In this document: piece after piece, positions 594-63,800 of the stretch
Position numbering within the stretch: position 1 is the stretch's first letter
Layout: the number at the start of each line of letters is the position of its first letter
Source of the DNA: Blastocystis sp. Blastoise
Taxonomy: Eukaryota; Protista; Bigyra: Opalinata
Assembly (NCBI GenBank): GCA_039096225.1
Contig: JBBPEB010000007.1
Span: 124,001-188,000, forward strand
DNA: 64,000 nt
Reading direction: 5' to 3'
Notes under the pieces: model-generated
Database searches by the model: none
The model's input: only the letters and a program-made list of their open reading frames with translations
Told to the model about the DNA's origin: nothing
Position numbers and translations under genes: made by a program

Positions 594-2168
594 TTACTTA
601 GCAAAGGTGATATGAAGTCTAGTTTTACCATCAAATGTATATCCTTTCATTTCTTCTAATGCTTTCATACTATCTGCTATACTCTGGAAATCTAAGAAAC
701 ATAAACCGCGGGAAATAACATAACGGGCACTAATGAATCCATCAAATCTATATATATATATATATTATATATGATTATTAAATAATATTAAAAGGAGCTA
801 ATATTTAATGATTCTGAGAGTATCACTGTTATATATATATACTATACTATACTATACTATAATAATATACTTGCTAAATAATTGTGTCATATATTCTTCA
901 GTAGCCATAGCAGGTAAATCAACACACATTAATAATTTATTAGGGGGATTATTTGGTAATTTAACCTATAGAATAAAAAGTAGTATACATATTATATTAT
1001 AAAAGATCGTTAATATAGTATAAATATATAAATAAAATAAATAAAATAATAAAAATAATATAAATAAAAAAATATATAACACAATAAAATAATAAAAATA
1101 ATAAATAAAAATGAATATAAACAATATAAATATACTTGAGGAGTGACTTGTTTAACAAGAGGAACTTGGCCCATTTCTTCATTGTCTTCTCCTTCTTCAT
1201 TATTCCCGTGATTATCTTTGCTATTTCCAAGAGGATGAACATAAGGTTTCTTAGGTCGAGGAATATATGTACCGTCTTTCTTTGTAATGAAATCAGATTC
1301 CATCTTTGCAAAAGAAATGATCTATATATATATATATAGTAATAGAAAACTTATACTAATAAAATTAAAGAATATAAACATAATAATATATAAAAATATA
1401 TAAAAATATATAAATATATATAAATATATATAAATATATATAAATATATATAAAAATATAAAAAAATATATAAAAATATAAAAAAATATAAAAAAATATA
1501 TAAAAATATATAAATATATATATATATAATATACATAGATTACATACCATAGATCGTTTATATAGTTCAACTCCACTCATTTTATTCTTAGCACGAACAG
1601 CATCTTCGATATTTTCAAACACTATCCATGCTTGACCCTTATAAGCAAATCGTTGTTCTCCCACGGTAATATTCAAAATCTTACCGAATTGAATAAAGAC
1701 ACCATAAAGAGCTTTTCGTAAAGATTGAGGTTTTACACTCATTTTTATATTTTTTATATAAAGAGTATGTTTTGCATCTTCAGGAATAACAAGAGGTTCA
1801 GATTCTGTATTTTGAGTTTCAATTTGAGGAACAGCTGCTACTATAGGATTCACAGGAGCTACAGGAATCATAGGATTCACACCAGGTATAGGAGCCATAG
1901 GATTCACACCAGGTATAGGAACCATAGGAGCAACACCCTGTTGTGGTGGCATCATGGGTGCACCCATAACCATAGGTTGCTGATAAGGCATTTGAAGAGG
2001 AGCAGGTGCTCCAGTAGGAAGTTGAGGAGGTAACATATTTGTCATAGGAGGCATAGGTAACTGTTGTTGAGTTGCATTGACGGGAGGTAATGGGATGGAA
2101 GCAGGTTGTTGAGCAGGTATATCTTCTTCCATTCCAGGAGCAGTTTCTACGTTATTTTCAATTTCCAT
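594..2168 (-). CDS. U1A/U2B''/SNF-family two-RRM snRNP protein (4 exons) with Pro/Met/Gln-rich N-terminal extension
   Basis: RRM1 TLYIKNI...LRKALYGVFIQFGKILNI...YKGQAWIVF...MIISFAKMESD. RRM2 PPNKLLMCVDLP...GLCFLDF...LHITFAK*. All three introns are GT-AG. U1A cannot be told from U2B'' by eye. Confidence 0.85.
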
Positions 2169-2556
2169 CTATATCAAAAAACAAATTAGAATCAAATTAC
2201 AACAATAAAATATCCTTAAACCGAAATAAATGATATAATAATAGTTAGTTTAAAAAATATCATGCATATATATTATATATACTCTCTTGTAGGCGTCAAT
2301 AATATTCAATTAAAAGGAAAATTTTTTTATTTGATTTGCTAGTTAAGCGCATTTCCATAAAAATTAATAATTTTTCGCGTATATTTATCAATATTTCTCT
2401 GATTATTATTTAGAATCGATGTTGCTGATTTCATCTGAAACAAAAAGTCATCGTCTTTTTCCCCATGAGTATTCTCAACCAACTTTTTTTTGACTAAAAC
2501 TTTCTTAACTTTCAAAGTATTGTCTGCATCTTTAGGCTTCTGTTTTTGTATAAGCA

Positions 2557-60800: not shown

Positions 60801-63800
60801 ACCTTTTGGTATACCAAATGACGAATTACCGCGGGGAATTGATAAAGCTGTATTAGAGAATATTATTTCAAATGAGAAAACATTAAATAATAATACGAAT
60901 TCTATGTTTAATGAATTATGTACAACTGGTAATAATGATAGTCTATATATATGGAAAAAAGGTGTATTTAATTTATTACATATTCAATGTCCTGATATGA
61001 ATTCAATGCCTATTAATAGTATTGAAAGAGAAAAGAAGAAATTAAGTGAATATTCACGGGAAAACATAAAGAGTGTTTCGAGTAAACATGAATTATTAGA
61101 ATCTATGTCTATGTGGTTATTATCATTAGATATGAAGAAGAAGAAAGGAAGTGAATTATTGAAATTATTATTTAATAGAACATTAGGATTATATTTATAT
61201 CAACAAACATTAATCATTAGCTATCTTGATTATGTATGTTTATATATATATATTTATATATATTTATTTTTATATGTTTCATTTTTAGTATCCATAATAG
61301 TGATTTTTATTATTTATATTATTGTTTATATTATTATATATATTATTTGTATTATATTATTATATATATTATTTGTATTATATTACTATATTAATATATA
61401 TATATATATATATAGTTAATGGAATTAGTTACAATTGAAGAACAAAAAGAAGGAATTGTACATGGTGGTTTATCAATAATCACGGGGAACTCAATAGAAA
61501 TAACCAAACATGAAGTTATTTTCACGGATATAATTAGTAAGGTTCCAAGTTATTATATAGAATTAAAAGTAAATCGTGGATTCACATTTGATGAAGCTTT
61601 AAAGATTAAAGGAACGAAGTATATATATATGATTATTTATTATTTATTATTTATTATTTATTATTTTTGTTTTTTTTTATTGTTAATATTTTTTATTTAT
61701 TATTTTTTATTTATTATTTATTATTTTTATTTTTTTTTATTGTTAATATTTTTTTTTATTAATACTTTATTATAAACATAAATATATAGTACATTTTGGA
61801 AGAGTCGAACAAGTAATTTTGGTAAAGTATTCGTTCTTTTAGCTATTAAAGAGATACAGGATACTACTGATTATGTATATATATATATATAGTATACTAT
61901 TCAGAATATATATATATATATATATAGTCTCATCCTCAAAGAGCGTTAACTACTTATCAAATAATTAGACCTAATACAGGTACATATATATATTATATAT
62001 TATATATATATATTATGTATTATATATATAGGAAAGAATTTAGTACCAATGACAGAAGGAAATTTAATGTTAAAATATAAGCCTATTAATGAGAATGAAG
62101 TATATACAATATATATATATTATATATACATAATATATTATATAGGCTCGTAAATTATGGACTGAATCATTAGAATATTCTAAGAAATACTGTTCTCATG
62201 GTCCCTCATGTAAAACCCCCTTTTGTGAAGCTGGTAAATGTATGCAAACAGTTCATTTTGTAACTGGAATATATATATATATATGGAACTTTATAAATCA
62301 ATGTGTAGGCCAAGGGAAAAAGCCTCGATTAGTACAAGTAAATTTAGATGAATGTATTAATGGAGATGTAGTCAAAGATATTGTAAATAACCAAGGGAAT
62401 CAGGATATTATAAAAGATATAAAGAATGATAATAATATATTAAATACTAATTTATCAGATGAGTTTAAACAGAAAGATAATAATAGTAATAATAATAATA
62501 ATAATAATATTAATAGTAATAGTAATAATAATAATAATAATAATAATAATACTCATTCCTTAACAAATCCTGAAAATAGCCATGTGTTGACAGGTGTTCG
62601 AGTATTAGGAAATTATGTGAACTGGCTGAAAAGAGAGTTAAAACGATATGAAGTAGAACGAAATAAATTAAGTATATTATTTATATCATTTATCTATATT
62701 ATTTATTTATATTATTTATTTATATTATTTAGTTATATCACATATTTATAATATTTATTTATATCATTTATTAATAGTATCTATGTATTTAAATACTATA
62801 TATTTAGTTGATGAAGAATATGTTGAAAGTCGTAAGAAATTACCTGAAATAACCAAGGGAATATCGTTATCAAATACAGTAGAGAATGATGCTGTTGAAA
62901 TTAATAGTGATTATGAAAGTGAAAATCAAGTTATTTCGACTAAATCTTCAAAGAAAACAAAGAAACAAACTAAATCTACGAAGAATAGAATATCCACTAA
63001 ATCAAATATGAATTCTACATTATCTGAATCTGAGAGTATCAATTCAAATCATTCATTTAAAGAAGAAGAAGAAGATGATGAAGAAGATAATGATAATGAT
63101 GGAGATGATGATGATTATGATGATAATAATAATGAAGATGATGATGAGGATTTTGAGGATACTGGTACTATAAAGAATAAAAAGAATAAACAAAATAATA
63201 AGAAACGTAATAGTAATTCAATAGATATTGATAAAAGTGAAAATTCATATACTTATAAGAATGGTAAGCGTACTAAGAAAGAGAATTCTATTCGAAAGAT
63301 TGAAGATGTATTTGGTATCCTAGATCATGATAAAGATACAGAACAGAAACAATTAGACAATCGCTTAACTATTTTAAGCAGATTTCAGAATCCATTTGAA
63401 GTAAGAACAACAAAAACAGATCAATTCTTAAGTCAATTTAATAAGAATAATAATAATAATAAAAAGAATAATAATAATAAAATGATCTTTTTGGATTTGA
63501 GTGATTCAGACGATAGTTTAGACTCAATTCATATAATCCCAAAAAAACAATCTACTTTACAGTCTTTTATTAAGATGAATTCAGACGATGAAACTGAAAC
63601 TGAAAATGAAGATATTACAAATATTATGAAAAATATGAATAAAAATAATATTGATAAAAAACAAGAAGATCCTGATCTTTCTGAATCATCAATAACCACG
63701 GGAATTGATTCAACATCAATATCTTTCTCTTCTTCTTCAAATTATGATGATTCTGTATTATCCATCGAGAATGCTCCTGTGTCTAAAAATAGTTGTTTAC

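Follow-up and report, generated by a model that had tools for sequence, protein, structure and literature searches.

A two-fold-symmetric 14-bp word iterated through the exons of Blastocystis sp. Blastoise, and its reading as the candidate site of a dimeric DNA-binding protein

The genome of Blastocystis sp. Blastoise carries a degenerate 14-bp word with two-fold symmetry, A-T-W-M-C-C-R-Y-G-G-K-W-A-T, which is placed in exons through rare synonymous codons, regardless of the reading frame and of the coding strand. We describe it here from one stretch of 64,000 nt with 22% GC (contig coordinates C29:124001-188000), the whole of which is referred to as the window, and from the genome of 33.34 Mb in 34 contigs to which this stretch belongs. 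The window holds about 20 to 25 copies of the word. In the genome it is present in full about 950 times, and its core, CCGCGG, occurs at least 2,367 times. The reading that we favour, with a confidence slightly better than even, is that the word is the site of a putative dimeric protein that binds double-stranded DNA, and that it is kept by selection for occupancy. The sequence statistics given below cover 258 kb of contig C29, 30 selected 3-kb loci and whole-genome pattern counts, and protein searches were made exon by exon, with no spliced models joined.

The motif had been noticed as a list of 26 near-matches in the window, and the sequences quoted for it are present at all 26 positions. 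Seven of these (702, 12707, 42155, 54668, 57043, 58954 and 61476) match at just 11 of the 14 positions and may include chance matches. The exact word ATWMCCNNGGKWAT occurs 8 times in the window where dinucleotide shuffles predict 0.03, and the core, for which the original prediction had given ten copies with well under one expected, was counted 10 times against an expectation of 0.07. CCGCGG is also the top hexamer of the window under an order-2 Markov model, with an 82-fold excess. Matches at 12/14 or better number 62, against 18 in a reversed-sequence control, and those at 13/14 or better number 34 against 1. Over the whole genome, the core is found 2,367 times and its reversed form GGCGCC, which is 12 times rarer, 197 times; the GC-centred 14-mer ATWMCCGCGGKWAT is found 306 times, with none for the reversed control, and the version with any centre 948 times, with 17 for the reversed control.

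This excess persists under the codon-aware null that had been proposed as a check on it, in which all predicted coding sequence was shuffled 500 times by exchanging synonymous codons between positions that share an amino acid. The core was observed 17 times in the 258 kb, where 0.69 were expected, and 9 times in the window, where 0.14 were expected, and none of the 500 shuffles reached the observed count. This null is conservative, because the rare codons of the motif itself stay in the pool. Under the same null in the 258 kb, other all-GC palindromes (CGCGCG/GCGCGC, CCCGGG, GGGCCC, CGGCCG and GCCGGC) are at expectation, and GGCGCC is slightly up (5 vs 0.84).

The word is described by a graded position matrix that is symmetric under reverse complementation. 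Read from the centre outward, each half-site runs CGG-[T/G]-[T/A]-A-T, followed by a weak preference for a pyrimidine and no conservation further out. Little information is found beyond the 14 bp, where the flanks are unconserved, and the AT-rich flanks of the word itself are specific, more so than plain AT-richness would make them. The original prediction had proposed two inverted half-sites around a freely variable two-base spacer; the symmetry and the 2-bp centre stand, but the spacer is not free. In a sample of 50 genomic sites, the central dinucleotide is GC in 15, AC/GT in 25, AT in 6 and AA/TT in 4, with no others, so that the centre is an R-Y step: about 96% of strand readings have a purine at position 7, and none has C there.

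The two half-sites are not paired at random either. Of 247 sites with one of the two main sequences (ATAACC or ATTCCC) in each half, 153 are mixed, 38 are ATAACC/ATAACC pairs and 56 are ATTCCC/ATTCCC pairs, whereas about 123, 53 and 71, respectively, would follow from the frequencies of the half-sites (chi-square about 15, calculated by hand). Neither the stop-codon constraint (the TAA inside ATAACC, in one frame) nor amino-acid composition is, by a rough calculation, sufficient to cause the excess of mixed pairs, which hints at a reader with unlike subunits.

Departures from the consensus are also ordered. Among one-mismatch neighbours, the commonest changes are G7>A (5) and C5>T (3), and none affects C6; C6/G9 is invariant among the near-matches seen, and ATAATC half-sites are a recurrent variant. 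Variant sites retain the rare codons of the word, as in ACC-ACG-GGA (Thr-Thr-Gly) and AAC-CAC-GGG (Asn-His-Gly), and for that reason they look selected rather than decayed; their centre often fits the residue that is needed at that place (Thr or His). We read them, from their sequence, as probable weaker members of the graded matrix and not only as decay products.

The placement of the word was followed with a 7-state, 3-periodic codon hidden Markov model (HMM) of our own, trained on 258 kb of contig C29 and 30 loci, by which 47.5% of the contig is coding. The coding segments contain each of the 18 copies of CCGCGG present in the 258 kb and each of 30 sampled copies of ATAACCGCGGGAAT. The core sites are called coding in 48 of 48 cases, and still in 44 of 48 when the emissions over the motif are masked, the four that lose the call being very short segments that include those at 7482 and 42280 in the window. 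Among sites at 12/14 or better with CC and GG both intact, 85 of 87 fall in predicted coding segments, and two apparent non-coding matches (C29:87151 and 88054) fall, on reading, at exon ends in a gene that looks kinase-like. As far as the HMM can tell, the original observation that introns are free of the word thus holds. A fixed position within exons was considered and rejected, the sites being uniformly distributed along predicted exons (Kolmogorov-Smirnov p=0.92); few of them lie within about 25 nt of predicted exon ends, whose boundaries the HMM places imprecisely.

The codons that spell the sites are rare ones (GCG 7%, CCC 10%, CCG 4%, CGC 3%, CGG 2%, GGG 7%, ACC 7%, AAC 10%). The 18 core sites, placed by their HMM states, use all three frames: 10 are read as x-Ala-Gly/Val, 6 as x-Arg-Gly and 2 as Pro-Arg. 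In the same way, 30 mixed 14-mers use all five of the readings that are free of stop codons, with 11 x-N-R-G-N, 9 I-P-A-V-I/M, 6 I-T-A-G-I/M, 3 F-P-R-L and 1 x-S-R-G-Y. Relative to the coding strand, the mixed word is written ATAACC...GGGAAT in 17 cases and ATTCCC...GGTTAT in 13, and the asymmetric centres read AC in 16 and GT in 10 (p=0.33); in the absence of any bias of orientation, the word is blind to the direction of transcription. The use of both strands and all three frames is therefore borne out, and so is the claim that the signal acts on the DNA and overrides codon choice, which agrees with the rare codons and with the excess over codon shuffles.

Within the 258 kb, 7 of the 25 [PT]-A-[VG] tripeptides (about 28%) are spelled with CCGCGG, and independent codon use would give about 0.2 by our own estimate. 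The word is therefore strongly favoured at compatible peptides and far from saturating them, and near-saturation was rejected as a description. The compatible peptides are themselves more frequent than in within-exon residue shuffles ([PT]A[VG] 25 vs 13.8, P=0.003; [NS]RG[NY] 4 vs 1.1; FPR[LE] 2 vs 0.3), with no excess for control peptides. This evidence, which is weaker and comes from a small sample, suggests that the word also bends amino-acid choice. In a separate observation, the word encodes I-T-A-G-I inside ...CYQLPAVITAGITVVISPL... in a RecQ-like helicase exon (L038:1458-1664), at a place where RecQ proteins presumably carry L-L-x-G-L, so that it may alter residues in a conserved block there.

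Relatives were compared at an exon of the RNA polymerase largest subunit (locus L027, identified by Pfam), where two Pro-Ala-Val-Ile peptides are both spelled CCC-GCG-GTT-AT. The protein search and metagenome scan gave only GC-rich relatives, with at most 81% identity. The nearest one obtained (P0001), whose RNA polymerase exon is 81% identical and lies on contigs with 52-54% GC, aligns without gaps at the two sites and keeps the residues, with the codons CCC-GCC-GTC and CCT-GCT-GTG and without the word. With no gap, the same residues and other codons, the sites arose by substitution and not by insertion. An inserted mini-element, such as a miniature inverted-repeat transposable element or its footprint, was accordingly rejected, the alignment being gap-free at both sites and the flanks past 14 bp unconserved. 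A second GC-rich relative, which is 60% identical and has 57% GC (metagenome contig ODLN01002137.1, L058:2287-2300), carries TACCCCGCGGTAAT where one of the two sites would be, an unremarkable single case at such a GC content that could be chance. The 81%-identical relative (L052-L057, Logan and ENA assembly contigs) is present in 24 or more public assemblies and may be a human-type Blastocystis subtype. The genome paper for the tortoise isolates, which is based on long-read, Hi-C and RNA sequencing, covers three of them, the most distant pair having about 56% protein identity (PMC12129017).

The distribution over genes is patchy. Hand grouping gave roughly 24 genes in the window, of which about half have a site, and the word is missing from a 2.7-kb UPF1 exon. 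These gaps, together with intervals that are irregular by eye (no formal test was made), led us to reject a regular spacing and a rule of one site per gene. The sites are clustered: among the first 100 listed copies of ATAACCGCGGGAAT there are 11 neighbour pairs closer than 2 kb, where about 1 to 3 are estimated by chance, and around a site the motif is about twice as dense as on average. In the one linked pair that was compared (L034 and L035), the flanks differ outside the motif. A long plus-strand gene that runs from 56504 to the end of the window at 64000 and on to about C29:195554 has about eight motif-like sites, including two identical copies of ATAACCAAGGGAAT 462 bp apart, and a gene that is subtilisin-like by its motif peptides (C29:233.6-235.8 kb) has six, of which five are at 13/14 or better and one is a CCGCGG site at 234,197. 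The carrier genes are diverse. Pfam matches include PIP5K, the DNA polymerase epsilon zinc finger and RNA polymerase, with a weaker one to TRAPPC13_M just under the curated cut-off, and conserved peptides point to a RecQ-type helicase, a kinase and a protease.

These features lead to the reading stated at the outset. The symmetry of the word, its neutrality to strand and its graded matrix of two halves argue for a duplex site read by a two-fold dimer, which agrees with the dimeric geometry first proposed. A sequence-specific protein dimer would read the duplex, each of its subunits contacting one 7-bp half-site, and the subunits might be unlike, because mixed pairs of half-sites are in excess. 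C6/G9 would be indispensable, whereas C5/G10 and the central R-Y step would tolerate transitions. The sites would persist against a strong mutation pressure towards AT because occupancy of the gene body is selected, and exons would offer cheap places to build them, since codons for Pro/Thr-Ala-Val/Gly, Asn/Ser-Arg-Gly and Phe-Pro-Arg already exist there and the neighbouring bases may be held by selection on the protein. As to its role, an architectural or chromatin mark of gene bodies, of the kind proposed for the cyanobacterial palindrome HIP1 (see below), and homotypic intragenic sites for a regulator of a subset of genes would fit equally.

Several points weigh against this reading. Non-coding DNA would host such sites at no cost to any protein, and yet the word is almost never there; that exons are the cheapest place for it is something that we infer. 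The exon calls come from the HMM described above and not from an annotation. Known readers with suitable domains were not found either: a six-frame search of the genome gave no match to the RFX DNA-binding domain (PF02257) at E<=0.01, and none to the Zn2Cys6 domain (PF00172), although the latter search matched in no control genome.

Among the alternatives, the one that survives best, even though we consider it unlikely, is a neutral, motif-directed drive, in which a bias of repair or gene conversion, such as very-short-patch repair linked to a methylase, keeps making functionless copies. It would account for a word found in unrelated genes, frames and strands wherever the protein permits, and HIP1 has been discussed in such terms (PMC4390886). 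The enzymes that it calls for were, however, not found. Genome searches gave no match for Vsr and none for N4/N6 methylases (N6_N4_Mtase), and the only C5-methylase match is a multi-exon gene with PPCQP and ENV motifs (C34:406469-408339, L051:1501-3371). Its best solved match is human DNMT2 (E=3e-36, vs 2e-9 for M.HhaI), which, with these motifs, makes it a tRNA methylase of the Dnmt2/TRDMT1 type. A drive further predicts a depletion of one-off neighbours, which are enriched instead, and should with time fill non-coding DNA, whereas 85 of 87 sites are exonic; only 28% or so of compatible tripeptides carry the word, and clustering within genes is not expected from a uniform process. For HIP1 itself, neutral replenishment was rejected by Xu et al. 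in 2018 on the conservation of sites between related genomes (PMC5861425).

Somewhat less probable still is an element acting in RNA, be it a protein-binding site in the mRNA, a splicing enhancer or a site for pairing between RNAs. Such an element would explain the restriction to exons, and additional exon marks are conceivable in a lineage whose introns are long and AT-rich, unlike those of human-associated Blastocystis (PMC12129017); the apparent scarcity of sites in the outermost 25 nt or so at either end of predicted exons would also fit, within the imprecision of the HMM boundaries. However, symmetry under reverse complementation is a property of duplex recognition and not of single-stranded RNA, and the equal use of both orientations of the mixed word means that the mRNAs hold two different sequences. 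Self-pairing is disfavoured by the preference for imperfect over perfect palindromes, and G-U wobble would favour CCGUGG over CCACGG, whereas AC is the more frequent centre on the coding strand. A mimic or complement of the 530 loop of 18S rRNA was also considered and rejected, as only the minority half-site GGTAAT would fit it.

The original prediction had listed a methyltransferase target among the possible roles, and the searches above speak against it. In this explanation, to which we give little credence, CCGCGG would be methylated at cytosine, and CCACGG, CCGTGG and CCATGG would be products of deamination; the centre variants do form the corresponding series of transitions, from GC through AC/GT to AT. 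Against it, besides the lack of any C5-methylase match other than the Dnmt2-type gene and of an N4/N6 methylase, the other CpG cytosine (C6) is unchanged in one-mismatch variants and the non-CpG C5 is changed, and CpG codons are not generally avoided (CGT makes up 29% of Arg codons). The centre variants, moreover, sit within rare-codon flanks and often fit a Thr or His that is needed. A target of SacII/Eco29kI-type restriction-modification, which would share the CCGCGG core, was likewise rejected, since no cognate methylase was found in the genome and an Eco29kI-type nuclease (RE_Eco29kI) gave no match.

The least probable explanation, and a very improbable one, is a relic of a GC-rich ancestor or a chance by-product of locally GC-rich exons: other Blastocystis genomes do have 39 to 55% GC (PMC12129017) and one GC-rich relative has TACCCCGCGGTAAT at an orthologous Pro-Ala-Val site, but the AT flanks are specific, the reversed core is 12 times rarer and other all-GC palindromes are at or near expectation, site-bearing exons are not GC-richer than other exons (0.313 vs 0.319), and at neither site does the 81%-identical relative have the word.

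The nearest analogue among known systems is HIP1, the highly iterated palindrome GCGATCGC of cyanobacteria (Xu, Lawrence and Durand 2018, PMC5861425; Elhai 2015, PMC4390886). Both are short GC-cored palindromes that are over-represented tens to hundreds of times, lie inside coding sequence and have no established function; the excess found here holds against a codon-aware null. The differences are that the host here is a eukaryote, that the word has 14 bp, with AT-rich half-sites of two flavours and an R-Y centre, and that its density is lower, at about 0.3 core sites per gene. Whereas HIP1 has two cognate DNA methylases, none was found here beyond the Dnmt2-type gene.

Eukaryotic dimer sites resemble the word in part. 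The consensus of COE/EBF, metazoan factors that act at regulatory sites, is ATTCCCNNGGGAAT, and the ATTCCC-RY-GGGAAT version of the word fits it letter for letter, with inverted 6-bp halves and a 2-bp centre. About half of the half-sites are, however, ATAACC, which does not fit, ATTCCC stands on both sides in just 56 of 247 sites, and the word is exonic, whereas COE/EBF are animal proteins of regulatory sites. The X-box of RFX, GTNRCC-N(0-3)-RGYAAC (for example GTTACCATGGTAAC), is read by a winged-helix dimer. Like the present word, it is a 14-bp palindrome that has T2, A13 and ..CC-NN-GG.. in register, and it differs in its outer G/C, which are A/T here, and in that the domain was not found in the genome search. 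In yeast, the pleiotropic drug response element TCCGCGGA is bound by Pdr1/Pdr3 zinc-cluster dimers, and centre variants of the TCCGTGGA type are functional. The everted CGG pair forming CCGCGG is common to both, but the flanks differ, position 4 being A or C here and not T, and no zinc-cluster domain was found, in a search without a positive control. E2F sites were rejected as a match, their core being GGCGCC or GCGCGC and not CCGCGG.

Bacterial uptake words (the DNA uptake sequence DUS and the uptake signal sequence USS) and Chi are non-palindromic prokaryotic words with known machinery, namely competence receptors and RecBCD. They are like the present word in being genome-wide, in a thousand or so copies or more, and tolerated in genes in several frames.

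The sites of the window are collected in the table. The exon peptide around the site at 10527 resembles a conserved segment of short-chain dehydrogenases.

Table. Copies and variants of the 14-bp word in the window (positions are those of the window; scores are matching positions out of 14)
Position	Type of site	Context
702..715	core CCGCGG, weak flanks, 11/14	minus-strand exon of an RRM protein gene, I-S-R-G-L
1202..1215	variant, 13/14, centre GT, G10>A	minus-strand exon, D-N-H-G-N
1657..1670	variant, 12/14, centre AC	in a 267-amino-acid RRM open reading frame (Pfam RRM_1)
4633..4646	perfect palindrome ATAACCGCGGTTAT	plus-strand exon, H-N-R-G-Y
4678..4691	variant, 13/14	45 bp past the 4633 site, same low-complexity exon
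7482..7495	exact 14-mer ATTCCCGCGGTTAT	edge of a short minus-strand exon, about 8 nt past an apparent AG acceptor; coding call lost when masked
10527..10540	core CCGCGG, 12/14	N-T-A-V-F within ...NTAVFLASD..., rare ACC and GCG
21713..21726	variant, 13/14, G10>A	plus-strand exon, F-P-R-L
24619..24632	variant, 13/14, centre AC	plus-strand exon, I-P-T-V
25161..25174	exact 14-mer, centre AC	F-P-R-L; centre variant synonymous (CCA for CCG)
33735..33748	core CCGCGG, 13/14	4.7-kb exon, N-N-R-G-D
37986..37999	exact 14-mer ATTCCCGCGGTTAT	same 4.7-kb exon as 33735, D-S-R-G-Y
38072..38085	variant, 13/14, centre AC	same 4.7-kb exon as 33735, I-T-T-G-N
42280..42293	perfect palindrome ATAACCGCGGTTAT	exon status uncertain: 21-amino-acid plus-strand HMM segment between minus-strand exons; coding call lost when masked
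53245..53258	core CCGCGG, 13/14	minus-strand exon, T-P-A-V-I; gene CCT-type chaperonin-like by eye
56585..56598	core CCGCGG, 13/14	first of about 8 motif-like sites in one long plus-strand gene
57043..57056	weak variant, 11/14, centre GT	could be chance alone
58954..58967	weak variant, 11/14, centre AC	could be chance alone
60825..60838	core CCGCGG, 12/14	L-P-R-G (CCG-CGG frame)
62387..62400	exact match to the first pattern, centre AA	N-N-Q-G-N
62849..62862	exact match to the first pattern, centre AA	I-T-K-G-I
63692..63705	exact 14-mer, centre AC	8.7-kb exon crossing the window end, I-T-T-G-I

Other sequence features were seen alongside the word. Near the start of the contig (C29:6625-7345), three non-coding motif-like copies share the flank tttcaaaa-ATAATCAYGGGAAT and lie 265 and 442 bp apart; they resemble units of a tandem or subtelomeric repeat in which the word is carried outside exons. 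Between predicted exons there are long (ATT)n, (AAT)n and (ATTT)n microsatellites, including those at 7201-7379, 7970-8168, 31020-31229, 57776-57961 and 60266-60451 of the window, several of which are mis-called by the HMM as poly-Asn exons. Such microsatellites fit the low-complexity content of 12% given for tortoise Blastocystis isolates (PMC12129017). In the window, TTGGCGG (part of an E2F-like word) and GCACGTG (which contains CACGTG) are enriched about 18- to 20-fold over the order-2 model and, like the slight excess of GGCGCC, may represent ordinary regulatory sites.

A literature search found no eukaryotic precedent for such a word and no Blastocystis paper with CCGCGG. The genome paper has no mention of 'palindrom' or 'methylation' (PMC12129017), and the publications found on 'highly iterated palindrome' and eukaryotes are, by their titles and abstracts, all on cyanobacteria. 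A bolder proposal, which we put forward as possible though rather doubtful, is that with this word a eukaryote would, for the first time, be seen to have an equivalent of the genome-wide words of bacteria (HIP1, DUS and Chi): a lineage-specific code of several thousand copies laid over coding sequence, overriding the choice of codons and in part that of amino acids, and read by a possibly heterodimeric protein acting on the scale of the chromosome. Such a protein might, for example, flag exons or whole gene bodies to chromatin, to cohesin or to splicing coupled to transcription, in a lineage where introns and intergenic DNA became long and extremely AT-rich.

In practice, the motif distorts analyses of codon usage and of selection in these genomes. 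If selection does keep thousands of copies, the exons of this organism would carry a second layer of information that is independent of the protein, forcing rare codons and possibly shifting peptides. The word would then point to a new sequence-specific DNA-binding protein, and would offer a tractable eukaryotic model for the role of highly iterated palindromes.

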